DNA of 64,000 bases. Source: Corallochytrium limacisporum Hawaii (Eukaryota > Protista > Pluriformea). Shown here in pieces: positions 8,290-40,662 of this stretch. The stretch is taken from positions 58,438-122,437 of the forward strand of contig PDIP01000054.1 of assembly GCA_002811645.1 (NCBI GenBank), in the 5' to 3' direction. Position numbers and translations under genes: made by a program. The notes under the pieces were generated by a model. The model ran no database searches, was not told the origin of the DNA, and saw nothing but the letters and a program-made list of their open reading frames with translations. The first letter of the stretch is position 1. The number at the start of each line of letters is the position of its first letter.

Positions 8290-8491
8290 NNNNNNNNNNN
8301 NNNNNNNNNNNNNNNNNNNNNNNNNNNNNNNNNNNNNNNNNNNNNNNNNNNNNNNNNNNNNNNNNNNNNNNNNNNNNNNNNNNNNNNNNNNNNNNNNNNN
8401 NNNNNNNNNNNNNNNNNNNNNNNNNNNNNNNNNNNNNNNNNNNNNNNNNNNNNNNNNNNNNNNNNNNNNNNNNNNNNNNNNNNNNNNNNNN
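8290..8491. other. Assembly gap
   Basis: N run flanked by C-runs. Confidence 0.99.
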
Positions 8492-9336: not shown

Positions 9337-9421
9337 NNNNNNNNNNNNNNNNNNNNNNNNNNNNNNNNNNNNNNNNNNNNNNNNNNNNNNNNNNNNNNNN
9401 NNNNNNNNNNNNNNNNNNNNN
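9337..9421. other. Assembly gap
   Basis: N run flanked by C-rich runs. Confidence 0.99.
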
Positions 9422-22281: not shown

Positions 22282-23859
22282 ATGAGCATGTCCCCAGAGG
22301 AACAGAAGGTTATTGGTGCTGCCATGCAGCGGCTTCCCGAAGATGTGAAAGGACGGGTGGGCAAGCTCTTCACTACAGCCATGCCAGAGCTGCAGTTTGT
22401 GCTGAAGGAGATCCTGATCGCTCTGGCACCCCACATCAACAACGGTGCTGCTGCAGCACCTGCCACTGGGGGCACCGCAAATGCTGCCTCCCAACCCGCA
22501 GACGTTAAAACTGAAGAAGAGCAGGCGGAGACAAAACCAGCGCCCTCCAGGCAACCGAAAATTGTCTCTCGTAACTGCGCATCACAAACAGACATTACTC
22601 TGCCGGATCCGCTACCTTCAGCAGCAACAGTAACAGGAGTAGTTATGCCTACAGTTGCCAACGGATCCGCTGTGGTTTCAGCGGCCCCGGTTTCAAAGGT
22701 CGGAAAGGTATCGAAGCAGATTTCTGTATCCGAGTCGAAAGAGGATTTCACACTGCTCAAGAACGTCGGCTTCACAGTACCGAAACGCAAGGGCCTGGAC
22801 CTGGTGTACCACGCCACGGACCGGTGTCTTCGCGCAATGAAGGACGGAACGCAGGCCGTCGCGCAGATTGCCGTGGATAACATCGCTCTGGTGGCGATCG
22901 TTGTGGATCATGTCAGTCCGACAAAAGCAACGTGGCATGCGTTCATAATCGAACACCCGTCCCCGAACTTCAAGCGCGCCAAACGGGGCCAACAAAATGT
23001 GGGAGAAGTGCTGGCTATTGCTTCGCCTGCGGTCGAAGGGTCGGAGGATTGTGTGGTGGACAGCAGTGGAAGCGGTGATGCGGAGGATGGTGACGCTCCG
23101 GCCGATGGGGGCAAAAAGCAAAAGGAAGGAAGGGGTGCGAAGCGTGCGGCCGCATCTGCGGCCAAGACCCAACGTGTGCCATCGAACAGTGCCGAGTTCA
23201 ATGCTTGGCTTGGGAACGAGCATCCTGAAATCGCAACTTTGGTCAAACACCTAAAATCCCTTCGTCCAAGCGGAATTCCAATTATGTTTGCGCGGGATAG
23301 CAGTTTTAAGAGCCAGCGCCGAGTTGGTGGCGGCTACCCATTTGTCATGGCAAATGTGAACATGAAGGAAGGACCACTGTACATCATGAAAGATGGTCTA
23401 CTTTTTGCCAAGAACCCATATTTGTGGATCCCATATGACGACATTGCCAACATGGGCTTGGAAAACGTGAACAGGCACACATTTGAGCTGCACCTCACGC
23501 TCAAATCTGGTGGACCAGTGGAAGAGCTCTGCATGATATCGGCCGAGGAAGTCGATGTGCTGGCGGAGCATCTGAAGCGAAACGCGGGCAAGGCCACGAA
23601 CTGGCAGGAGACAAAGCAGGAAGACGGCGATGACGATGACGACGACGACGAAGACGATGAGGACGAACAGGATGCGGACTTCAAAGAGGAAAGCGAGGAA
23701 GAGAGCTCCAGCGATGAGGACAGCGAAGATGAAGGCTCAGGAGAGCCGGAGGACGAGGAAGATGAGGATGGAGAGGAAGACTTGGAGGACGAAGAGGAAG
23801 ATCTTGAGGAGGAAGAAGAGGAAGCCTCCAAACCCAAGAAAAAGCCGCGCCATGTCTAA
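22282..23859 (+). CDS. RTT106: Rtt106-like histone chaperone (double PH domain plus acidic tail)
   Basis: N-terminal helical LPEDVKGRV segment, PH1-type NVGFTVPKRKGLDL, PH2 KEGPLYIMKDGLLFAKNP...TFEL...LCMISAEE, Asp/Glu tail of about 70 aa, terminal NLS KPKKKPR. Confidence 0.75.
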   Translation: MSMSPEEQKVIGAAMQRLPEDVKGRVGKLFTTAMPELQFVLKEILIALAPHINNGAAAAPATGGTANAASQPADVKTEEEQAETKPAPSRQPKIVSRNCASQTDITLPDPLPSAATVTGVVMPTVANGSAVVSAAPVSKVGKVSKQISVSESKEDFTLLKNVGFTVPKRKGLDLVYHATDRCLRAMKDGTQAVAQIAVDNIALVAIVVDHVSPTKATWHAFIIEHPSPNFKRAKRGQQNVGEVLAIASPAVEGSEDCVVDSSGSGDAEDGDAPADGGKKQKEGRGAKRAAASAAKTQRVPSNSAEFNAWLGNEHPEIATLVKHLKSLRPSGIPIMFARDSSFKSQRRVGGGYPFVMANVNMKEGPLYIMKDGLLFAKNPYLWIPYDDIANMGLENVNRHTFELHLTLKSGGPVEELCMISAEEVDVLAEHLKRNAGKATNWQETKQEDGDDDDDDDEDDEDEQDADFKEESEEESSSDEDSEDEGSGEPEDEEDEDGEEDLEDEEEDLEEEEEEASKPKKKPRHV

Positions 23860-24036: not shown

Positions 24037-26622
24037 TCACTTACCCCATTCTCGACGCAACTTCATGCGCGCTTCGTAGTCCCGGGCACCGGCTTCAACA
24101 GACATGGGCGTGTACCGAGTGGCCAGATTGCTGAAGAAACGGAGCTGGCTGTCCCGTACGTCCTCCGGGAAATACCAGACATGATACCACAGCGTGCCCT
24201 GGGCCAGGGCCATTAGCACTTCCGTGGTACCGACAGGGAATCGTTTGTATCCAGCTCGGTGCAGCAAAATCTTGGCCAAGGTCGCCAAAGCGTTGATGGC
24301 AGCGTAGAATTGAATGTCCCTCTGCCGCCAGACACTGCTCGCAGCAAAGGCGGCCAGGCCAGCACTGGCGGCAAACGCCGTCTGGGTCAGGGCCTCTGCA
24401 CCACTGCGCCTGCGGTTCAGCAGGGCTGTGATCAGCGGACCACCAGCACTCAGGAGGAATACGAAGACAGCCGGCCGGATGTTATCAATGCGCAGAATGG
24501 CTTGGAGAATTCGCTGAAGTGTGCTTTCGCCGCCTCCAGACCTCTTCATGCCAAGCGCCCTATAGACAAGATGTTCAATCTTGTACCCAGACTGAGTGGA
24601 TGACACCGCATCGACGGCGTCCTCCCCGGCCTCTAGACTGCTATCATCCACCACATCCGCGTCCTCCTCCCCGGCCATGACGCCAAGGCGCGGCCCTTTG
24701 CCGACTAGCGGAGTCCGTAGTCCCGCGGCTGGTCCGGTTGGGCTCACAATCGGTTCGCGCGCCGACTCAAAGCTCTGGTCATGATCACGACCGCGATTGC
24801 CAAAGGTTGATTGGTGCTGGCTCGTGTTGAGCATGTTGGAAGTATTCACGTTGCTGTCGCCAGCCAGTGGACCGTCTGTAATGGCACTGTTGTCCAGTAG
24901 AGGATTTCGTCTGAATCCGCCTATCTTCTTGCTCCGCTTACGCCGATTATAAACCAGGGCTATTAAAATACCGTAGGCCACTCGCACCGCCAGCATTGCA
25001 GCCGCTGTCCGTCCCGCTCGCTTCAGAATGGTAGACCGCGCAGTCGCCGCAGAGCCCGGCTGTGTTAATTTCATTGGATCCTGCCCGTACAACAAGCCCA
25101 GAGCAAACTGAGGCAGGCCGCGCAGCGTGTCAATCTTTGACTTGTCCCCGGATACCCACAGCGCCGACAGCGCAGCCCATGCACCCGCGAACATGAGTTC
25201 TGGTGCGTGCGGCACCCTGGGCAGCCAGCCAATCCGTACCAAGTGAGAGAACCACATGTCTAAACTGTTGTTCCACATGTACAGAGACAGGGCCTCCTTG
25301 CGTTGCGCGGTCTCCACAGTGCTGGCTGCCAGACTGGAAATAAAGCCTGCGGCAAACTCAGATTGGAGATGATGTTTACCCAGGGTACTCCGCAGCGCAC
25401 ACCGAGCTGCGCCATGACCCACAGAACTGATAGTCAGGAACAAACCGCTGCGCATGATCTTCGGGATAATCTGCCGCAGCGTGGTGATGGGTTGGCGAAA
25501 GACTTCACCGTTGAGGATCTTTGGGCCGAGGAAGACCACTGTGTAGACCCTGCAGAATTGCGGATACATGGCCACTGCAACCTTGAGCCAGTACGTGCGG
25601 CAGTCAGTGAGGCCAGTGTAAGGGTGGAAGAAGTCGCTGCATGATTCCTCGGTGATTCGGTCACCAATGTGTGGAGGTGGGTCGATGCCGGGGATGCGGA
25701 ATGGATCGTGGATTCGCAAGGCAGAGACGTCATCGTTGTCTTCAATGTAGTCGTTATCATCACCGTCTTCGTGACGGTCCTTCCGATGATGGGGACGTGG
25801 ATGTTTCAAGTCCTTTGACTTCAGCTTGCCCGTAGCCCCGCGCTTCCGTGGAGATGCATCTGCACTCTGATGCTTGCTTCCCTGTTGCGACTTCTTCGGT
25901 GAAGTTGTTTTGTTGTGCTTGCGGGGGGAAGGTAGCTTGCCGTTCTCGGGAGGGTTGTCGTTTTCATTGCCGTTCTCGTCCTTCCAGGTGAATTGAATGG
26001 CGTTTTCGCTAGTGTTAGTCGCGACGCTTTCCCGCAAAAATGTGGATCCACCGATTGGTAGGATACCCGGTGCTTCATCCGAGACGTTCGACTCCAGCCG
26101 CTTGCGCGGTCTGACGGCCATGGCATCCTCCGTTGATTGGATACTTGTCCGCGATTGGCTGCGGCGCCGACTACGTGGTTGGTGACGGGGCTGACTGGTT
26201 ACACTCCCTGGCGTAGCGGCCACAGTAGCAGTGTCAGTAGCCCGTTTTGGAGACAGTGCATGAAGCAAATCAGCGGAGAAGCTCGAGACCGTGGGCGTGG
26301 CCGTACCGACAGAGCCGGCAATTCCTGTGGCCGACACAGAGCTCTGGTTCAAATAGCTGCCGGCACTGGCTTTCCGATGTCGTGGAATTCCATGGCGACG
26401 AGGAGCCGCCGACATGGGATCGATGAGTCCCTCATGACTGGCATTCAGAGGGGTCTGTCCCGGATGGTCCACCATGGCGAGCCTGTTTGCGAAAGGTCCA
26501 CTCGAGTCCTTCCTCCCTGACCACACGCGTTTCCGTTCCGATCCAGTGCGTGGTGATGCAAAGTTACCCGACTTGGGCGTCCTTGCTTCTGTATTAGTGT
26601 TCAGCCTCTTCAGGTCACTCAT
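24037..26622 (-). CDS. TMEM135-family membrane protein with long disordered extensions
   Basis: Cys-rich motif SCSDFFHPYTGLTDCRTY, RSGLFL, AGFISS.A...VE..RK.ALSLY, C-terminal R..QLRFF; first ATG at 26622 (track start is GTG). Confidence 0.78.
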   Translation of the reverse strand: MSDLKRLNTNTEARTPKSGNFASPRTGSERKRVWSGRKDSSGPFANRLAMVDHPGQTPLNASHEGLIDPMSAAPRRHGIPRHRKASAGSYLNQSSVSATGIAGSVGTATPTVSSFSADLLHALSPKRATDTATVAATPGSVTSQPRHQPRSRRRSQSRTSIQSTEDAMAVRPRKRLESNVSDEAPGILPIGGSTFLRESVATNTSENAIQFTWKDENGNENDNPPENGKLPSPRKHNKTTSPKKSQQGSKHQSADASPRKRGATGKLKSKDLKHPRPHHRKDRHEDGDDNDYIEDNDDVSALRIHDPFRIPGIDPPPHIGDRITEESCSDFFHPYTGLTDCRTYWLKVAVAMYPQFCRVYTVVFLGPKILNGEVFRQPITTLRQIIPKIMRSGLFLTISSVGHGAARCALRSTLGKHHLQSEFAAGFISSLAASTVETAQRKEALSLYMWNNSLDMWFSHLVRIGWLPRVPHAPELMFAGAWAALSALWVSGDKSKIDTLRGLPQFALGLLYGQDPMKLTQPGSAATARSTILKRAGRTAAAMLAVRVAYGILIALVYNRRKRSKKIGGFRRNPLLDNSAITDGPLAGDSNVNTSNMLNTSQHQSTFGNRGRDHDQSFESAREPIVSPTGPAAGLRTPLVGKGPRLGVMAGEEDADVVDDSSLEAGEDAVDAVSSTQSGYKIEHLVYRALGMKRSGGGESTLQRILQAILRIDNIRPAVFVFLLSAGGPLITALLNRRRSGAEALTQTAFAASAGLAAFAASSVWRQRDIQFYAAINALATLAKILLHRAGYKRFPVGTTEVLMALAQGTLWYHVWYFPEDVRDSQLRFFSNLATRYTPMSVEAGARDYEARMKLRREWGK

Positions 26623-26839
26623 TGGGCCCGATAAGTGTTGGCAACCCGAATGTTTTGGCCGCAATACTCGTGCAAGAGTTTCTTGAGCGCTGAATACCAC
26701 GGCCCTGTTGGATTCGACAAACCTTGTGTAGGTTGCATGCACTTGATTACATGCGGTATCATATGTTCAGTTCATAGAAAAAATGCCTACCCCACGTACA
26801 CGTAACGCAGGCACCACGGCGTTTGCCTGTCATGCGCGA

Positions 26840-27820: not shown

Positions 27821-28479
27821 ACCAAACCGAGAACAGCAATCAAACTCGTCAAAACGTCCACCGGATCACCATGGACAGGCGGCTCAGCATGGAACTAGCG
27901 AATCTCTGTGCTGACCTGGAAGAATGTGTATATGTGTGTGTGTGTAAGTCAGATAGTCTGTTAGCATGGCAGACATCGTCGTGGACTGGACACCAAATGG
28001 ATGAGATCTATGAATTACATGTGATATCGAACACCATGTTTTTTCTACGGTGCTCCGCAGCAACTGTTCGTGCTCTGTTTCCCTGGATAGAGACAAATGC
28101 CACACCTCCACATCACTGGTCTTTCGTCAAATGTGGTCGCGGTTCCATCATCTCTCTCCCCGAAGACAAACTGCAGGAGAATCGAACGAAACAGACCGTC
28201 TAACGGTCACTTTAACGCAACAACGAAGAAAATGGACATCAGCGGACACGGAGAGTTTGAGAAAGAATGCGCATGGTGGTCGTGCGCGTTGAATCTGGAA
28301 GCTTCCGTCTTCCCGTTATCACCATCCAGCATCAAACCAAGAAACCATAAAGCCCATCCAAAATGCAAAATACCCAATGAGACACGTACCTAAACACACC
28401 TCGGTCTGGCCATGGGGTTTCCCACCACGGGTGTGTACCCAATTGCCACCACCGTTCCCTCTGCATCATTGTTCTGGCC

Positions 28480-30060
28480 GAGTGTGTGTGTGTGTGTGTG
28501 TGTGTGTGAGCGAGTAGCGGGTTGCGGGCTGTAAGAATCGGGTGGCTAAAAATACATTCCCGTCCCCGTGCCTGGACTCTTCCACCGTCTCCCCCCCNNN
28601 NNNNNNNNNNNNNNNNNNNNNNNNNNNNNNNNNNNNNNNNNNNNNNNNNNNNNNNNNNNNNNNNNNNNNNNNNNNNNNNNNNNNNNNNNNNNNNNNNNNN
28701 NNNNNNNNNNNNNNNNNNNNNNNNNNNNNNNNNNNNNNNNNNNNNNNNNNCCCCCCCCCCCCCCCTGCCGTTCTACTACCACAGGAACCATGGGGGAATT
28801 CAGCGGAAATTCAGCCGGGCAAATGCCTGACGGTTTTGAAATCATTGCAGGACTCGCGAGTCCTCCTCCACCTCACCTTGGAACCACCCACCAGGCAGGA
28901 GACTGGGACAGCGGGCAGACTTGCCCTGGTTTTCTCTCTTTTGGGATCTTTTTTTGCTTTCAGTGTTTTTTGGGGGTGAGAGAGGAGCGAGCAAATGAAC
29001 CCCCCCCCCGGGGGGGGCCTGGGGAGGAAATAGGCCCCAAAACAATCACAAACTAAATCAGAAATCAAAAGGAGGCCCCCCCCAACCAGCGATAAACTTT
29101 CCTTTTGGGGGGGTTGCCGGCCACCATTCTGCCAAAGGGGAAGAAAGTCCAAAACCGCTCCTTACTTTCCCCTAACCTGGCCCGTCCGTTCCCTTTTGGC
29201 GGTGTATTGTAGATTTTTTTGAAATACGGTCCGGTACTTGGGCCATATTGAAAGGGGTTCCATTTTTGACCAACCTCCAGGCTCTCCAACCTGGGAGACG
29301 AAGGCACCCCCCCCCTTCCCCGGGCCTCCCATGGAAAAGGTAGAAGAAGCAAAGCCAGACCCCGGGAGAACGAAACACCCAAAAAAAAAATAAGGAATGG
29401 TTGGAGACCAAGAAGTTCCCGCCACTTTTTTCCATGAAGGTTTTCCTTCCCCTTCTTTTCTCTTTTTCTTTGTTGCTTTTATTTTCTTTCGCTTGTCTAA
29501 TAAAACAGACGCAGGCAATGAACACAAAACCCCCCCCCCCCCCGGGGGGGCCGTTCCGTCCGAACGCAGTGGAGGCCCGTCGCCGCCCCCCCCCTTCCCC
29601 AGGGACAGGGCTCTCCCCCTTTTTTTCTTTTTTCCGTGCTTTAGTATCGAATTTGTATGGGATGGATTTCAAGGAGAACCACCGAGAGCGCCGAGGCCCG
29701 GTTACAGCTCCGAAAACGAGAAAGAAAAATTGGAAAATTTCTGGGACGGTAACCATCGCCAGAGAACGAACGGTGGAAAAGGGAGGCCCCCCCTCCCCTC
29801 TGCGGCACAGGCGGGGAAGTGGGGCGGGAGACCTCGAATTGAACCGCCCCGTTCTTGAATCAATTTTCCGTCGGTTGGATAAAGAGATCCATTGTTTCGC
29901 TATTGGTCCGACGCCCTGTGTTGGGCCCCGAGTCTCCCAAATGTTGTCTGTGTGCGTGCGTCGGGGGCGGGTCGCCGGTTTTAGTTTTTATCGCCGGGTG
30001 GGTCCCGTGGCTACGGGCCCAAACCCCCACCCCGCGGGGCCCGCGCGGGGTAGGTGGCTC
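28480..30060. promoter_or_regulatory. Low-complexity island upstream of the TM/H1-tail gene (contains a gap)
   Basis: (TG)13, C15, C10G8 (29000), C14G7 (29530), A10, T-runs. Confidence 0.5.
28598..28750. other. Assembly gap
   Basis: N run between C7 and C15. Confidence 0.99.
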
Positions 30061-30385
30061 TCATTCATTTTTGATTCATCAACCAATGGACAACATACAC
30101 ATGCATCATTAGGAATATACGCACACCATTGACATACACATCTAAAGCTGAAAACCTTATACCCGGCTGCTTGCGCACCCAGAAAGACAAAGACAAAAAA
30201 CTTTGGAGGGTTCATGTTGACAACGGGCCGCTGGTTGGACAGTTTGTGTGTCCAAGACGAAAGGTATGTAAAGATCGGCAGAAATACTGACACTAAAGGA
30301 GCACAGAAGTTTACATTTTGAAAGGAAACAACCTCTTCTGTATATCACGGGATCATAAACGTGGAAAACAGTATACGCACACAAA

Positions 30386-31729
30386 ATGAGTCTCAAACTC
30401 ATGCAAGATTTCTTTCCGGGGCTATTCTGGCTGGTAGACCAGACGGTTCCGGACGTCATTGACATGGTCTACCCCTCGTATCTGCCAGCAGAGTGCAGAA
30501 CCGTGGCCCCAACAGCCCCCACCCCGGCTCTCCTTGAGCCCGTGTCAATGGGCAAGTCGGTCATGAAGTGGCCAACCTTGGCCCCTGTGGCAGCCCTGGG
30601 CATTCTGGTGGGCTTCCTGGGTGCCTTTGTGATCGTGAGCCAGCTGCAGGACGGCAAGGTCTCGGGACCTCGCTACTTCAGCTACGGCCTTTCTTTCTTC
30701 TTCTTTGGCTGCATGAATTTGGTCGCCATTTTCTTTCACTGCTTCCTCGATAAGGGCGAACCGGGTTGGGATGAGCTCTACGCCCTTGACGTTGGTTTCA
30801 CGTCGGTGGCGAGTCTGTCCTTGATTGCAGGGGCCCTTTGCGACGCCGGCTACTTGGATGACACCAAGGACGACGTCCGCATACCCCTGATGATCGCCTA
30901 TCCCAGCGTCTTGCTGACTGCCTATTTGGGTCAGATCAACGACATCTGGTTCGTCGCTGAGTTTCTGTACCTGGACGTCTCTTGCCTGGCCGCAATCGCC
31001 GTCATGTCTCTGATCGTACAGCGCACCTATGCTCTGACCGGAGACTTTCCTCCCGGTTGGGAGGGACTGGCTTTTGCTTCTGCCGCCGCAGGTGCCTTCA
31101 TGCTCGCGCCTGTGGACGGTTTGCTCTGTGAGTTCCTCGGACCGAACTTTACGGTCGTCATCTGGGTCTTCCTTGGCTGTGATCTCGCCTATGTCGGACT
31201 ATTTGTGTATCTGACCGCATCTGAAGGAAAGATTCCTCTGGGTGCCTCCAAGAAGAAGGCCAGCGCTCGTGCCTCTAAGGCAGCCAGTGCTGCGGCCAAG
31301 GCTGCGTCCAAGCCTCGCGGCAAACCCGGTCCCAAGCCCGGCTCCCGCAAGAGCTCCGCCAAGTCTTCGGCGAAGAGCAGCGGCAAGTCCTCCACCAAAT
31401 CTGCTGCGTCTACTCCGAAGCCTCGCGGCCGTCCCGCCGGTTCAAAGAACAAGACTCCGGCCAAGAGCAGCTCCAAAAAGACTCCGGCCAAGAGCAGCGC
31501 CAAGAAGACTCCGGCCAAGTCCAGCGCAAAAAAGACTCCAGCCAAATCCAGCGCCAAGAAGACTTCGGCCAAGGCCACGCCAAAATCTCGGGCGTCAGCA
31601 AAGAAGCCCGCCTCCAAGAGCAGCGCCAAGTCCACGCCCAAGGCGACCGGCGGACGCAAGCGCAGCGCTAAGGACCTCGTCAGCCCGCCTGTACTGCGGT
31701 CGGCCAGCAAGTCTCGCGGTCGTAAGTAA
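30386..31729 (+). CDS. Polytopic membrane protein (about 7 TM) with AT-hook and histone-H1-like C-terminal tail
   Basis: Residues about 60-277 contain about 7 hydrophobic helices; the last 160 aa or so are Lys/Ser/Ala/Pro-rich with KPRGRPAGSKNK and KTPAKSS(S/A)K repeats; GC3-rich codon usage throughout. Confidence 0.88.
   Translation: MSLKLMQDFFPGLFWLVDQTVPDVIDMVYPSYLPAECRTVAPTAPTPALLEPVSMGKSVMKWPTLAPVAALGILVGFLGAFVIVSQLQDGKVSGPRYFSYGLSFFFFGCMNLVAIFFHCFLDKGEPGWDELYALDVGFTSVASLSLIAGALCDAGYLDDTKDDVRIPLMIAYPSVLLTAYLGQINDIWFVAEFLYLDVSCLAAIAVMSLIVQRTYALTGDFPPGWEGLAFASAAAGAFMLAPVDGLLCEFLGPNFTVVIWVFLGCDLAYVGLFVYLTASEGKIPLGASKKKASARASKAASAAAKAASKPRGKPGPKPGSRKSSAKSSAKSSGKSSTKSAASTPKPRGRPAGSKNKTPAKSSSKKTPAKSSAKKTPAKSSAKKTPAKSSAKKTSAKATPKSRASAKKPASKSSAKSTPKATGGRKRSAKDLVSPPVLRSASKSRGRK
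31451..31573 (+). repeat. Coding 27-bp tandem repeat (KTPAKSSAK x about 4.5)
   Basis: AAGACTCCGGCCAAGAGCAGCGCCAAG-like units that differ mostly at synonymous positions. Confidence 0.92.
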
Positions 31730-32113
31730 AACTCTTCTGCGGCAGTAATCAAAGAAACAAATCACAAATTTCATCGCACACCTACCCCACACAAAAACAC
31801 ATACTTCATCCCTTATCTGCAAACTCGCACACATCACGCACTCCTCGCACACTTTTTCTAACACGGCTAAAAGCAAATTACACAGAGAGATACTCTATAT
31901 GGCCCTGGTCACTCCGCCCGCAGGCGTGCCGTTCTCATCGTGTTGATCATGGCGAAGGAAGCGCACTGCCCACAAACATAATTCAGAAAATTAAAATAAA
32001 TGGAACAAGTCTCATGTAATTTATAGTCTAAAGTCCGCTTTCTTCGTGAATTTTCGTGTTTCGTCCTCTCGGAGACACTGTTGAAGCGGTGCGTTGCTGC
32101 TGGGCCGAAGATA

Positions 32114-34780
32114 TCACAGAGCCGGAAATTCACTAATCTCCGCCTGCTCTACCGTCTGTTGTCCGGTGCCCGGGTCATTGTAAGTGATGCGCAGACGCAT
32201 CTTCAAGGCAGCCCCGGACGGATTGAGGACCTTGATGCCCTGAGTAACACCACCGTTGTTCATGGCAGGCACTTCCGTACCACTGGCCGAACTGAGTTGC
32301 AGCTTGAACTGCTTGGGTACGGCTGCCTGTAAATTGTACCCAGATAGAGCACTCATGCCAGAGTTCGTGGATGTCACGTGGATCTCTGTGACGTGGGCAT
32401 TGGATGGGCTCTTGCTGCAAGCAAACTCCACTGACAGTGGACCCTTTTGGTATGCTGTGAAGGTCCCTGGATCGGTAGCAGCCGGAGCAGCAGTGGCACC
32501 ACCTGCAGGAGGCGCAGAGCCACCGCTGTTGAAGAGATCGAGAATATTTTGATTCGTAGTTGACGCAGCAGGGGCCGCCGACGAAGCCGCGGGAGCGGCT
32601 GCGCCACCGCCGCCTCCCAGGAGGTCATCCAGGCCACCATCCATGGCAGCACCGACACCACTTGGGGCATTGGAACTACCGCCCATGCCACCAGCGCCTC
32701 CCAGTAAATCGTCTAGACCGCCACCCATTGCCGCAGGCGCTGCAGCAGGCTTAGCGTCTCCGCCTCCCATACTCATACCTCCTAGTAGATCATCAAGACC
32801 GCCACCCATGGCGGCAGGCGGAGCACCGCCACCATTTTGCGCCGGTTGGGTCGAAAAGTCGTCTCCGAGCAGGTCCAGGAGATCATCGCCTGACTTCTGA
32901 GGAGCAGAGCCCGCATCCACCTCCAGACCAGCAGCTCCTGTGTGGGGTCCCTTGGTCTTCTTCACACCGATGGCATCCTGGACGCTAAGTTCCATAGCCG
33001 GCATGCGCTCCAGCAAATTCTGCCGTAACGAACCGCCCTGGTTGTATAGTGCCAGATACTCCACGGCACGCTGCTGCAATTCTGCATCCATAGTCGAGGT
33101 GAAGCGATTGAGGATCTTCAGAGCGCTGTCCTCCACAGTAATGTCGGACAGACGCACGGTACACTTAACCACCGCATTGAGGGCGTAATCTTTGGTCACC
33201 TGGTTTGAATAGGGGCTCGTGCAAACCTTGTAGAGCAGGTTCATCACGTCGTGGCTGCTCACCGCGGTACTGGCGTCTGGGTCGTCATCGTCGGCATCCA
33301 GGCCCTCACCGGCAACCAACAGATCCGCATACTCGCCAATAGCCCACACGGACACCTGAGCAAGTGGCTGTGATCGCTGGTCCTCGTTCAGAGAATGGAA
33401 CAAGCGCTGTGTGGCGTAACCGTACAGCTGCTTTGAGGCACTGATGAGCTGGATCATACCACTCACCACGTCGTCCTTGACGTGGTTCTGTGCATTGACC
33501 AGGACCTTGATGCATGTGTCCATGAGCCATCGTCGATTGGGAGCAAAACGACTAGCAGCAATGAAAATGTTTGACGCCAGGTAGGCTTTGAATTCCGTAT
33601 CCGCGACCTCTAGGAACAACAGCAATTCCCGCACCAGTACCCGTACATTGTCCTGGTTGATGAGCACAAATATGAGCTCCATTGCACGACGACGAATTGA
33701 GACGTCCGGATCCCGCAGACAGTCCACGATAGTGCCCCGATGGCGCTGCACGGCAGTATTGTCAATCTGTACGCAGTGCTGCAGAGTAGACAGAGCCACA
33801 AAACGAATATTTTTGTCGTTGTTCAGCAGGAAGCGTCCGAGAATGTTGACCGCAAGTACCCGCAGTGATGAATCTGCTTCAATGCCCATGATGGTGAGCA
33901 CACTCTCATAGAGGATGGCGTTGCCCACGTTTCGTGCGCTTTCCGTATTGGTGGCCACCTGGGCCAGGACATCGTTGATGATGTCGCTGGTGTCCACATC
34001 GCCGGAGCCTAGTAGACGCAGCAAGCGCAAGATACGGACCTGCAAGAACGGATCCGTTACACCATTCACGTCGTGGTCTGCGAGATACGAGCTCTGGCTC
34101 AGGTTCTTGAGACTCCGCACTAAGTGGGGTACAGTATTCTTAAAATCTTCGGCCAACTCCAGTTGCTGCCTCAAAAACTCAGTCACCAGGGTCACACCAG
34201 TCAGCATCACTGCATGGTTCCGCTCCTGCAGCAATTCCTTCGCTCCCTCAACGTACAGATCAATCATGTCCGGCACTCTACGAATGATACGTACCGCACA
34301 CAGTGCAGCCTTCTTGCGTACGTACGGGTTCTGATGGTTGAGCAGGCCTTGTACAGCATCAGCCAGATCACGCGCCATGTCAGTTGAGCAGATCGTGGCC
34401 AACGTATTCAAGGCCAGCGAAACAACATGCTGGTTGTGACTGCCCATGTCAACCTTCAGACTGTTCGTTACCAGCAGATGCACCTCCGTCCGTTCATCAA
34501 GTAGAAGACTCACACCCAAGTAACCCACACGTTTATCAATAAAACGAGGAGACGCCACCAATTTCAGGCACTCCAGCTGGCCAAAATGGGCAGGGTAACC
34601 GAGGAGATAAATGTACAGCAGTTTGGCAACATTTTTGCACCGACTATCATTATCCTCCTCGCGAAAAGAGGTACGGATCAGAGCAGACTCTCTCTGAATA
34701 ACCGCACGCTCCTCGGCAGCAGTTTTTGTACCTCGAATCTGACGAATCAGTTCGCGGAGTCGGACGCTAGCTCCCACCAT
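32114..34780 (-). CDS. AP1G1: AP-1 complex gamma-adaptin
   Basis: RLRELIRQIR..KTAAEERAVI, LGYPAHFGQLECLKL, GNAILYE, ELQQRAVEY, LLERMP, hinge with LLDLL clathrin box, C-terminal GAE ear (QAAVPK..KLQL). Confidence 0.97.
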   Translation of the reverse strand: MVGASVRLRELIRQIRGTKTAAEERAVIQRESALIRTSFREEDNDSRCKNVAKLLYIYLLGYPAHFGQLECLKLVASPRFIDKRVGYLGVSLLLDERTEVHLLVTNSLKVDMGSHNQHVVSLALNTLATICSTDMARDLADAVQGLLNHQNPYVRKKAALCAVRIIRRVPDMIDLYVEGAKELLQERNHAVMLTGVTLVTEFLRQQLELAEDFKNTVPHLVRSLKNLSQSSYLADHDVNGVTDPFLQVRILRLLRLLGSGDVDTSDIINDVLAQVATNTESARNVGNAILYESVLTIMGIEADSSLRVLAVNILGRFLLNNDKNIRFVALSTLQHCVQIDNTAVQRHRGTIVDCLRDPDVSIRRRAMELIFVLINQDNVRVLVRELLLFLEVADTEFKAYLASNIFIAASRFAPNRRWLMDTCIKVLVNAQNHVKDDVVSGMIQLISASKQLYGYATQRLFHSLNEDQRSQPLAQVSVWAIGEYADLLVAGEGLDADDDDPDASTAVSSHDVMNLLYKVCTSPYSNQVTKDYALNAVVKCTVRLSDITVEDSALKILNRFTSTMDAELQQRAVEYLALYNQGGSLRQNLLERMPAMELSVQDAIGVKKTKGPHTGAAGLEVDAGSAPQKSGDDLLDLLGDDFSTQPAQNGGGAPPAAMGGGLDDLLGGMSMGGGDAKPAAAPAAMGGGLDDLLGGAGGMGGSSNAPSGVGAAMDGGLDDLLGGGGGAAAPAASSAAPAASTTNQNILDLFNSGGSAPPAGGATAAPAATDPGTFTAYQKGPLSVEFACSKSPSNAHVTEIHVTSTNSGMSALSGYNLQAAVPKQFKLQLSSASGTEVPAMNNGGVTQGIKVLNPSGAALKMRLRITYNDPGTGQQTVEQAEISEFPAL

Positions 34781-37944: not shown

Positions 37945-40662
37945 TTACATCCACTTATTTGTACTGGCAGCCGCAATCTTCTGTCGGTAGTTGGCCACAG
38001 AGGCGTCAAAGTTGTCGGTAGCCTCGCGCTTACGCTTCAACTTCTTCTGCCTCTGCTTGTCTAGGAGGGCGGAGTGTGTACCATCGACGACCAGCTCGGC
38101 ACCCTCCAGAGCGGCCGCAAACTCGCGCTCTTCGTGGCTAACGATGCTGCCACTGCCGACTGTGGCACCCGCGGTACTCACAGCAACTTTGGCACCCCGC
38201 CGCTGCTTCGCGGACCGTTGGTTGGCCTTCGCCTCCTGGCGGGCCTTGACATCGCCAAGCAGCGGTTTTTCGTGCTTGGCCCAGGCCTGCGAGGTGCCGT
38301 TCTGTTGTTGCTGCCGTTGTGGTTGCTCAGCTTGCTGATCATCTTCGCTGGCCTTCTGCTGCCGGGTGCGCTCGCGACGTTCGCGCCGACGCTCGCTGCG
38401 GGACTTCTTTGCAGTCTTTGCCTTGTCTTTCCGCTTCTGTGCATTGGTATCATCGTCTAGTGGGATCTCCATCTCTGGTCCTTCGCCTACAGACTGATTC
38501 TGTTTCCGCTGCAGACGTTGCACCCGGGCCTCATGAAGGCGCATCTTGCGCACGTCCTCGACGCTGAACTCAACAATGGGACGCTGCTGCGGTCCAAACA
38601 CCTTTGGATTGTTGTTCAGAGCCCGAAGTGCTGTAAGGGCATCCTCATGCTTGTTGAAGTTGACAAAGGCAAATCCCTTGGACACCAACGGGGCTTCCGC
38701 ACTGGTGCGCTCTCGAAAATGGTTCAGCTTCGCAAACCTCACCCGCCGCTCCGTCTTATCAAATATGACATCCATGAAATGCTTACTCAGGCCATCGTTT
38801 TCGCCTTGATCCTTCGGAATGTTGCGTACAACAATGCGCAGGGGATTAATGTGGAAGTTTGGATCCTTAAGCTTGCGCAAGCGCTCAGCGTCGTAGCGTT
38901 GCCTGCGGCTCAGATCCTGCTCGCTTAGGCCTTTGGCTTCTAGACCTTCCGGATCGATGTGGCCCTCGACGGCCAGGTGTAGGTTGCGCTTGTCCTTGTC
39001 ACCGCCCAGAGCTTGCGTCTCGTTGCGCTTCTGAATGACGTCATCAACCCGATCACGGGACACGGCATACGAAACATACACTCTGCGGCCTGCCACAAAG
39101 AATGGACCCTCAGCGGGGCCATCGTCTGCAGCGGTGGTTTGGGCATCGTCCCCAAGGGCTTCATCCGCACCAACGCCAAAGTAGCTGCCGCCTTTGCCTC
39201 CCTTCGTGGCATTGTGTCCCATGGCTTTTCCACTGCGGTAGGCATCACTTTCTGCGTTGGACTGAGCCACACATTCCTTGGCACTGCTCTTCCTCTTGAA
39301 CTTGACGAATGCACTGCCCTTCGGGAGACCGGTGCGCTGGTCAATCACAATTTTTACGTCCTTGACGTCACCAAACTTCTCAAAGCATGTCTTCAGCTGG
39401 GCCTCATCAGCTTCAAAGGAAATGTTCCGCACAAACAAGGTCTTGCCATCATTTGCGTCAGTCATGGTCTTCGGATCAATGCGCTTGGGTGCTTCCTTGG
39501 CAGGCTTTGTTTTCTGCTCCCCCTCCTCCTTCGGGTCATCACCTTTCCCATCATCCTGAACATCGGCTTCTACCAAATTGTCCTCCGGTGCAGCGTCCAT
39601 TTCCGTTTGCTGTTGTTCCTTCTCGTAGTCCTCCCGCTTAATGCACCAATCCACGGCAATGGGCCTTCCAGCAATCTCCTGGGCATTTAGAGCATCCATA
39701 GCCTGCTTTGCGTGTGAAATACACATAAATTGCACAAATCCAAATCCACGGCGCTTACCCTTGGCATCCGTCGGCATGTTGATGGGTTCACTTAGCGGTG
39801 CACCAGGCACTGCCTCCCGAAATTTCTCTTCTAGCCGCTCCGGTGTCACGGTGAAGCTCAAATTGCGTATAATTAGACGCGCCTCCTTCAGTTCTGCGGC
39901 ACGCGCCTTGGCATGGCGAGACATGACATGGGCGTGGATCATTTGGCCCTTGAAAATGTGTCGGTTAAGCTTTTTCTCAGCAAGATGGGCACGGTAAGGT
40001 TCCTCATACTCCACCACAGCCGTGGCGAGGCTTGAGTCGGCATTTCCCTTGTACCCATGCTCTTTCTCCATAGTCACTTTGGCTACATCTGCAATCTTGC
40101 GCACCTTCTTGTACAGCACCTTCTGCGTCACATCCGCTGGGAAGCCACTGATGTAAACACTGCGACTGAGAAGTTCCCGCTCAGGATCTTTCTGTGCAGT
40201 TGCTCTTCCAGTTTCTTTAACGTCCTTCTGTACTAATGTGTATGCTTCTGGTGGTGCCTTGCTTGCTTCCGGGGGTTCCCCTTGTTCATGTGACCCTACA
40301 GTATGGTCTCCGGTTTCCGCGTCAGTCTGATTATCGTGGGTCTTTACTTTCCTTCCCGGTTGCGCGGGCTTAGCTACCATCAAGTGCACCTTGCGTCCAC
40401 GAATCTCTTTGCTCTGCAGTTCTTTAACTGCGTTATCAGCGTCTTCTTTAAAAGCATATGTCACGTATCCAAACCCACGGTTAAGTGGTTGCGCTGTGTT
40501 CTTAGTCTTTTCATCATGGATCACAAAGCATCTCCGCACGGCACCGACCTCAGAGAAGATCTCCTCTAGTTCTGCAGAAGTGACATGATAATTTAAATTG
40601 CGAACAAATACTGTCAATCCCTTTGACAGGGCCTCCTGGTCATCTATGGTATTGGAGGCCAT
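37945..40662 (-). CDS. RBM28: RBM28/Nop4 nucleolar multi-RRM protein
   Basis: RRMs (VFVRNL/RGFGYV; LIIRNL/RGFGFV; LFVRNI/KGSAFV; SKGFAFV) plus diagnostic DKRNLHLAVEG and LNNNPKVFG..RPIVEFSVED. Confidence 0.95.
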   Translation of the reverse strand: MASNTIDDQEALSKGLTVFVRNLNYHVTSAELEEIFSEVGAVRRCFVIHDEKTKNTAQPLNRGFGYVTYAFKEDADNAVKELQSKEIRGRKVHLMVAKPAQPGRKVKTHDNQTDAETGDHTVGSHEQGEPPEASKAPPEAYTLVQKDVKETGRATAQKDPERELLSRSVYISGFPADVTQKVLYKKVRKIADVAKVTMEKEHGYKGNADSSLATAVVEYEEPYRAHLAEKKLNRHIFKGQMIHAHVMSRHAKARAAELKEARLIIRNLSFTVTPERLEEKFREAVPGAPLSEPINMPTDAKGKRRGFGFVQFMCISHAKQAMDALNAQEIAGRPIAVDWCIKREDYEKEQQQTEMDAAPEDNLVEADVQDDGKGDDPKEEGEQKTKPAKEAPKRIDPKTMTDANDGKTLFVRNISFEADEAQLKTCFEKFGDVKDVKIVIDQRTGLPKGSAFVKFKRKSSAKECVAQSNAESDAYRSGKAMGHNATKGGKGGSYFGVGADEALGDDAQTTAADDGPAEGPFFVAGRRVYVSYAVSRDRVDDVIQKRNETQALGGDKDKRNLHLAVEGHIDPEGLEAKGLSEQDLSRRQRYDAERLRKLKDPNFHINPLRIVVRNIPKDQGENDGLSKHFMDVIFDKTERRVRFAKLNHFRERTSAEAPLVSKGFAFVNFNKHEDALTALRALNNNPKVFGPQQRPIVEFSVEDVRKMRLHEARVQRLQRKQNQSVGEGPEMEIPLDDDTNAQKRKDKAKTAKKSRSERRRERRERTRQQKASEDDQQAEQPQRQQQQNGTSQAWAKHEKPLLGDVKARQEAKANQRSAKQRRGAKVAVSTAGATVGSGSIVSHEEREFAAALEGAELVVDGTHSALLDKQRQKKLKRKREATDNFDASVANYRQKIAAASTNKWM

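Follow-up and report, generated by a model that had tools for sequence, protein, structure and literature searches.

What would a seven-helix membrane protein do with an AT-hook? The question is raised by a gene of Corallochytrium limacisporum Hawaii, located at 30386..31729 on the + strand of the stretch of DNA analysed here (64,000 nucleotides of contig PDIP01000054.1, positions 58,438 to 122,437, called the window hereafter). Its predicted product of 447 amino acids (aa) combines an integral membrane domain with a long basic tail that contains an AT-hook of the HMGA type and an array of Thr-Pro sites. A preliminary description of the locus, based on the letters and on translated open reading frames (ORFs), regarded the protein as an inner-nuclear-membrane tether that holds DNA directly and is released by phosphorylation, an idea that is plausible by analogy with known tethers.

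A single gene joins a membrane domain to a basic tail

The ORF at 30386-31729 (+) runs through 447 codons from an ATG to a TAA stop without an internal stop, as a single exon, so that the two halves do lie in one uninterrupted frame, as the preliminary description stated. The start codon is considered secure because the alignments of the family to which the membrane domain belongs begin at residue 1 with a conserved MS...FFP motif. The frame of the ORF has the best codon-usage score of the three + strand frames in both halves (0.257 for the membrane part, 0.284 for the tail), and GC content at third codon positions is similar (0.69 and 0.73, respectively). The gene model in EukProt, in which seven neighbouring ORFs are likewise entered, is an identical 447-aa protein; this model is possibly ab initio and is therefore weak independent evidence for the fusion. 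Because the tail is devoid of Met, no separate ATG-started gene is possible in its frame. Two separate genes were thus ruled out on three grounds: the lack of Met in the tail, the like codon usage of both halves and the identical EukProt model. Judged from its reading frame and coding properties, the fusion of seven-helix domain and tail is genuine, lineage-specific and contained in a single-exon gene, with a transcript structure as predicted from the ORF.

Two more long open frames overlap the tail, at 31242..31748 (+) and 31189..31752 (-). The antisense frame reaches a codon-usage score of 0.261 vs 0.284 for the real frame, and it scores as well because of complementary codon bias. Both extra frames are most likely an artefact of low-complexity repeat DNA.

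An AT-hook of the HMGA type

The HMGA-type hook, with an upstream Thr-Pro-Lys site and a GSKNK extension, spans residues 343-356 (31412..31453, +), and the hook peptide proper occupies residues 345-356 (31418-31453), where it had been placed before. When residues 335-365 were compared as a 31-aa query with the PDB, the sole match was the second hook of HMG-I(Y) bound to DNA (2EZD/2EZE, E 0.0067). The alignment covers the Thr-Pro-Lys site, the Pro-Arg-Gly-Arg-Pro core (residues 345-350) and the Gly-Ser-Lys-Asn-Lys extension, with Thr343 aligned to T53. When the tail was shuffled 200,000 times with its composition preserved, bare RGRP arose 852 times and basic-Pro-RGRP 23 times, and the hook together with its GSKNK extension arose in none. 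Both results bear out the assignment of PRGRPKGSKNK to the HMGA AT-hooks. The motif is genuine by sequence, and DNA binding is predicted for it. In HMGA1a, an extension of the GSKNK type raises affinity 10-100 fold, and cdc2 phosphorylates S36, T53 and T78 beside the hooks, lowering affinity by about 4.5-fold (PMC7145567).

A second hook-like motif, described earlier as KPRGKPG, was also recovered by pattern search: KPRGKP is present at residue 309, in a degenerate form (residues 309-315; 31310..31330, +) with a PRGKP core in which Lys replaces the second Arg. The likeness to HMGA1 (HMG-I/Y) is therefore that of residues 343-356 to DNA-bound hook 2, CDK (cyclin-dependent kinase) site, core and extension included. 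It does not extend to the whole protein, since members of the HMGA family are small and soluble and have three hooks and an acidic C-terminal tail, whereas one canonical and one degenerate hook, a single tail Asp and a seven-helix anchor are found here.

A putatively phosphorylatable repeat array in a tail predicted to be disordered

Downstream of the hook, five tandem 27-nucleotide units (31451..31585, +; residues 356-400) encode the nonapeptide Lys-Thr-Pro-Ala-Lys-Ser-Ser-Ala/Ser-Lys. Four of the units carry TPAK, a full CDK consensus, at residues 357, 366, 375 and 384, which accounts for the four TPAK sites counted previously, and K-S-S-x-K spacing occurs eight times in the tail. The repeats had been said to differ mostly at synonymous positions. 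This is true of units 1-4, where 16 codon differences are synonymous and 3 non-synonymous (small numbers; non-synonymous to synonymous ratio pN/pS 0.24), including an AGC/TCC serine switch, but not once the divergent fifth unit is added (19 vs 19). Repeat DNA dispersed in the window was also considered and ruled out, as the unit was found nowhere in the window outside the array.

In the register Thr-Pro-Ala-Lys-Ser-Ser-Ala-Lys-Lys, the nonapeptide aligns with the C-terminal repeats of Spt5 (8QSZ chain Y, E 6e-6; also 6IR9). Shared features are the period of nine, Thr-Pro-Ala at positions 1-3, Ser at 6, Lys at 9 and the CDK-type Thr-Pro array. Spt5, however, belongs to the context of transcription elongation factors, and its KOW or NGN domain is absent here, and the likeness is probably low-complexity convergence.

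The tail as a whole (residues 286-447) consists of 39 Lys, 38 Ser, 32 Ala, 16 Pro, 11 Arg, 10 Gly and 10 Thr, with one Asp, no Glu and no Met. It has 48 Ser/Thr in total and a net charge of +49. This count agrees with the earlier picture of a tail of about 160 aa rich in Lys, Ser, Ala and Pro with a single acidic residue, which is Asp429. Counted from the end of the last membrane helix (residues 279-447, 169 aa), the basic segment has an isoelectric point (pI) of 12.0 and a mass of 16.8 kDa. In the full-length AlphaFold model, an Ala/Lys-rich juxtamembrane helix is seen at residues 287-307 (31244..31306, +; block predicted local distance difference test, pLDDT, of 83-86). Past residue 308 the tail is predicted to be disordered: beyond about this residue, most of it has pLDDT near or below 50, and in the distal basic part, which contains Asp429 (residues 401-447; 31586..31726, +), pLDDT is below 50 for 409-447.

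A seven-helix family without a name

The nature of the membrane domain was left open by a word search with the membrane part, in which only the protein itself was matched, and by Pfam, so an exhaustive HMMER search with the domain was carried out at a cut-off of E<=1e-3. It gave 95 relatives with a best E of 5e-23; the best ones (E 5e-23 to 1e-17 over residues 1-278) are 28-33% identical over that region. Named sources are the nucleariid Lithocolla, volvocine and other green algae, Pyramimonas, the moss Physcomitrium, Euglena and the stramenopiles Triparma and Attheya, and many further relatives come from marine metatranscriptomes. All relatives are described as 'hypothetical' or 'uncharacterized'; the name 'PGAP3', given automatically in UniRef to one Tetrabaena relative, was not reproduced by Pfam. 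Pfam returned nothing above threshold on the whole protein and 61 relatives (DUF6962 was weakly matched in 4 of 61 members, best E 0.005), NCBIfam gave no match to the protein, and a PDB profile search with the family found nothing below E 0.2. The best 50 Foldseek matches in the PDB were generic seven-helix bundles, G protein-coupled receptors and rhodopsins; their TM-scores lie between 0.26 and 0.49, and the lowest E is 3e-3. By profile alignment, the membrane part is thus a member of a widespread, uncharacterised eukaryotic seven-helix family for which there is no Pfam or NCBIfam model, solved structure or name.

Conservation was counted in an alignment of 61 sequences (A1). Met110 and Asp135 are invariant (61/61 each), followed by Thr139 (60/61), His118 and Tyr195 (59/61 each), Pro63 (58/61), Cys37 (56/61), Cys248 (53/61), Glu192 (49/61), Asp244 (44/61), Cys265 (42/61) and Asp266 (37/61). 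The resulting family signature is MS...FFP, Cys37, Pro63, Met110/His118, Asp135/Thr139, Glu192/Tyr195, Asp244/Cys248 and Gly-Cys-Asp in helix 7, all of which the window protein has. The His of AIFFH and the Asp of the next helix, singled out in the preliminary description, thus proved to be His118 and Asp135, among the most conserved residues of the family. With an invariant Asp and a near-invariant His in its membrane domain, the family is worth recording whatever the tail does.

The tail, on the other hand, was seen in none of the 95 relatives, which answers the question of whether homologues carry it; they end 5-30 residues after helix 7 or have unrelated C-terminal extensions (Gly/Ala-rich, acidic or Mpo1-like in some of them). 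Queried by itself in a word search, the tail had no relative at E<=1e-3, and Pfam gave no match to it even at E<=10. A scan of metagenome contigs with the single protein yielded no close relative and only a spurious 21-residue match. As far as these comparisons reach, the tail is a lineage-specific module, added at a position that tolerates extensions.

Layout and orientation of the membrane part

An AlphaFold model of the membrane part, built on the 61 family sequences, reached a mean pLDDT of 88 and a predicted template modelling score of 0.89. It begins with an N-terminal cap (residues 1-64; 30386..30577, +) of three short helices and a beta-hairpin (48-61), in which the FFP motif, Cys37 and Pro63 are conserved and which is predicted to lie on the luminal or outer side. 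The membrane core follows (residues 65-278; 30578..31219, +), delimited by hydropathy, AlphaFold and family conservation. Hydropathy and the model agree on helices at 65-88, 97-120, 128-153, 162-184, 190-218, 224-251 (kinked) and 257-278, which makes the earlier figure of about seven transmembrane helices exactly seven. The pI of the membrane part is 4.1.

The orientation of the protein was predicted by laying the helix boundaries of the model on the family alignment and counting loop charges in 60 relatives. Loops 1, 3 and 5 together hold a mean of 3.6 Lys/Arg, vs 1.2 in loops 2, 4 and 6, a bias present in 48 of the 60, and the short C-termini of relatives hold a mean of 3.5 Lys and Arg. By the positive-inside rule, this bias together with the basic C-termini of relatives places the C-terminus in the cytosol and the N-terminal cap in the lumen. 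The tail is accordingly predicted, in silico, to lie on the cytosolic side, which would be the nucleoplasmic side for a protein of the inner nuclear membrane, and not in the lumen, as the proposed function needs. Cys37, in the cap, and Cys248, where helix 6 ends on the cap side, are conserved jointly in 52/61 sequences; on the side opposite the C-terminus, such a pair would fit a disulfide in an oxidising lumen.

The conserved polar residues are placed at the end of helix 2 (M110, N111, H118), at the start of helix 3 (D135, T139), at the start of helix 5 (E192, Y195), in helix 6 (D244, C248) and in helix 7 (C265, D266). The resulting cluster of His, Asp, Glu and Cys appears to lie near the luminal face, and the core is probably an endomembrane enzyme or carrier for a lipid-like substrate. 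A link of the family to ER (endoplasmic reticulum) lipid metabolism is hinted at by a marine relative (P0008; L004:336-1694 of a TARA metagenome scaffold), in which one continuous ORF joins the seven-helix domain to an Mpo1-like 2-hydroxy fatty-acid dioxygenase domain (Pfam PF06127, 28.8 bits vs a cut-off of 24).

The CREST superfamily includes alkaline ceramidase, PAQR, Per1/PGAP3, SID-1 and TMEM8. Three motifs define it (PMC3146951): an SxxxH that closes helix 2, an Asp that opens helix 3 and an HxxxH that opens helix 7. The core studied here had been called loosely CREST-like. It shares with CREST proteins the seven core helices and an Asp that opens helix 3 (the invariant Asp135 of helix 128-153). 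The SxxxH motif is matched loosely: His118 closes helix 2 in 59/61 sequences, on the membrane face that also bears Asp135, and four positions before it stands a small residue, Ala in 34, Gly in 14 and Ser in 13 of the 61 sequences. The third motif is absent, as helix 7 has Gly264-Cys265-Asp266 in place of HxxxH and no conserved His there. Nor was a link found by profile hidden Markov models or structure: CREST Pfam models matched none of the 61 members (none at E<=10 in six of them), and no CREST structure was among the 50 best Foldseek matches. Kinship with CREST is therefore a lead, not a finding.

A candidate tether between membrane and DNA

How might such a protein work? It would be inserted in the ER, and its 17-kDa tail should be small enough to pass the pore membrane, the diffusion limit of membrane proteins past the pore being roughly 60 kDa. 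At the inner nuclear membrane, the protein would be retained through binding of the tail to DNA, the hook lying in the minor groove of AT-rich DNA while the Lys-rich repeats contact the backbone. Proline-directed and basophilic kinases, acting at the Thr-Pro sites and the many Ser, would then neutralise charge and loosen the contact. The complete chain, in which the protein diffuses from the ER, is kept at the inner nuclear membrane through its hold on DNA and is loosened by phosphorylation, is proposed tentatively, at somewhat less than an even chance.

Among known nuclear-envelope proteins, LBR has a nucleoplasmic tail that is phosphorylated by CDK, and combines a lipid-enzyme core with a chromatin handle. 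It is the closest functional analogue of the candidate function considered here, as both proteins have a multi-pass core of enzyme type and a basic, Ser-rich tail. The tail of LBR, however, is N-terminal, with a Tudor domain and an Arg-Ser region, and its core is an ERG24-type sterol reductase, whereas the present tail is C-terminal and hook-bearing, on an unrelated seven-helix core. Tudor, ERG24 and LEM domains were not found by Pfam, in keeping with the earlier suggestion of an analogue of LBR and LEM proteins with a different architecture; the likeness is one of architectural logic only. At a more general level, 46% of candidate nuclear-envelope membrane proteins, vs 4% of ER/Golgi ones, possess a basic cytosolic domain of more than 100 aa, and direct DNA binding is a property of the LBR, LAP2beta and MAN1 tails (PMC2063857). 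With 169 aa on the predicted cytosolic side and its pI of 12.0, the protein shows the feature described by Ulbert et al. 2006, which is enriched in this class and does not define it (PMC2063857).

The tail had also been called linker-histone-like. It does resemble the C-terminal tail of histone H1 as a predicted disordered polycation of Lys, Ala, Pro and Ser with S/T-P-x-K sites, and to this extent the comparison stands. H1 tails, however, hold roughly 40% Lys and far less Ser than the present tail, in which Lys makes up 24% and Ser 23%. The winged-helix globular domain of H1 is also absent (at a cut-off as loose as E<=10, Pfam matched Linker_histone neither in the whole protein nor in its tail), and no significant sequence relative of the tail was found, so that the likeness is one of composition only. 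Another partial parallel is ELYS/AHCTF1, whose AT-hook is reported to dock nuclear-envelope and pore assembly on chromatin under regulation by mitotic phosphorylation; ELYS, unlike the present protein, is a soluble nucleoporin with a beta-propeller and not an integral membrane protein. Of 27 papers matching AT-hook together with transmembrane and inner nuclear membrane, the 15 listed, judged by title and abstract, describe no integral membrane protein with an AT-hook.

A bolder version holds that something like LBR arose independently in an intron-poor relative of animals, from an ER lipid-processing seven-helix enzyme, an HMGA-type hook and a CDK-switchable polycationic tail, giving a direct membrane-DNA tether; this is possible and distinctly doubtful. 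If it were true, the protein would be without precedent among known integral membrane proteins in using an AT-hook to keep chromatin at the nuclear envelope. It would show that a tether can be assembled from very simple parts, an arbitrary ER membrane protein and a single AT-hook carried on a charged chain that can be phosphorylated, and would support direct DNA binding by basic tails as an ancestral and easily evolved means of recruiting membranes to chromosomes. The protein would also offer a compact reagent for phospho-regulated release and a minimal, tractable model for the making and breaking of envelope-chromatin contacts in open mitosis, which has been reported in Corallochytrium and Chromosphaera (PMC11153136).

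Alternatives to a nuclear tether

Several points weigh against a role at the nuclear envelope. In the collections searched, no other species shows the fusion, and the evidence for selection within the repeats amounts to only 19 codon differences. That the family resides in the ER or nuclear envelope is only presumed, and the predicted topology would require 64 N-terminal residues to be translocated although they lack a signal peptide. No strict K-K/R-x-K/R nuclear localisation signal was found in the protein by a simple regular-expression search, and polycations are known to bind RNA, acidic lipids and microtubules as well as DNA. The last two points are shared by what is, in our view, an unlikely reading yet one to be taken seriously, namely that the protein is an enzyme or carrier of the ER, Golgi or plasma membrane whose polybasic tail serves outside the nucleus, on acidic phospholipids at contact sites, in mRNA or ribosome anchoring, or on microtubules, with a hook that is incidental or RNA-binding. 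The Lys-rich region of p180/RRBP1, for instance, anchors mRNA or ribosomes to the ER. A tail that is by its pI a generic polycation would suit this role, the relatives, whose basic C-termini are short, bear no hallmark of nuclear proteins, and no significant relative of the tail links it to chromatin proteins. Against this, the match to the DNA-bound hook of HMGA1 runs through 14 positions and takes in the extension that raises affinity, which is hard to account for unless the hook binds the minor groove, and only 4% of ER/Golgi membrane proteins have long basic cytosolic domains (PMC2063857).

It might also be asked whether the tail matters at all. As a recent and largely neutral extension, born of stop-codon loss into a low-complexity repeat, or as an artefact of the gene model, with a transcript ending near codon 285, it would be expected to be a singleton, and the fusion is indeed one among about 15 billion proteins; the two other open frames across the tail, which point to low-complexity DNA, and the doubtful independence of a possibly ab initio EukProt model are compatible with this. 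Such an origin is improbable, however, given an exact HMGA-type hook in 0 of 200,000 shuffles, a frame whose codon-usage score is the best on its strand and equal to that of the membrane part, the 16:3 ratio of synonymous to non-synonymous differences with its serine switch in units 1-4, and the lack of a Met to start a separate product. More improbable still is a membrane-tethered regulator, whose tail would be cleaved from the seven-helix anchor on a signal to enter the nucleus as a small HMGA-like chromatin protein, much as SREBP and ATF6 are released from membranes by cleavage. The resemblance of the tail to a small soluble AT-hook protein and the separate helix 287-307, which joins it to the last membrane helix, could be read in this way, but neither a protease site nor a motif for regulated proteolysis could be recognised, and with no such behaviour in any relative the proposal is purely speculative. 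Finally, the Lys/Ser-rich K-S-S-x-K spacing, present eight times, recalls diatom silaffins, and a comparable domain in the lumen of a mineralising vesicle was considered. This has next to no chance of being correct: the charge rule places the tail in the cytosol, an AT-hook has no role in silica biology, and the gamma-adaptin encoded next door is closest to animals and unicellular holozoans, not diatoms. A diatom silaffin-like tail was rejected on account of this neighbour, which places the organism near animals and holozoans.

Genomic surroundings

Genes are densely packed in the window, and both strands contain long uninterrupted ORFs. GC content is about 52%, and four assembly gaps are seen as N runs at 8290-8491, 9337-9421, 14493-14698 and 28598-28750. 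Rfam and transfer RNA scans of the window gave no matches. The 2.2 kb on the 5' side of the gene (28200-30385), which include the last of these N runs, contain no ORF among those tested, and have C or G runs that give poly-Pro or poly-Gly translations in several frames. The adjoining gamma-adaptin gene (32114-34780, -) encodes a protein that is closest, over its full length, to animal proteins (45-49% identity) and that also matches the EukProt unicellular holozoans Opistho-2 and Colp12 (60% identity over 72% of the query in Colp12).

Other neighbours are likewise single long ORFs, namely a protein with an Rtt106/FACT-like histone-chaperone middle domain (22282-23859, +) and a protein with five RNA recognition motifs (RRMs; 37945-40662, -). 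All proteins looked up, the gamma-adaptin and the RRM protein included, are singletons at 90% identity in the protein collection. Together, single long ORFs and singletons fit an intron-free, sparsely sampled lineage. Corallochytrium has about 0.0 introns per kb of coding sequence at conserved sites, compared with 0.7 in Chromosphaera (PMC5560861). A 901-aa ORF at 24037-26742 (-) has a TMEM135-type N-terminal Cys-rich region (E 7e-7) and, near residue 224 of its ATG-started form, a basic stretch rich in Ser, Pro and Lys, making it another membrane-type protein in the window with a basic low-complexity insert.

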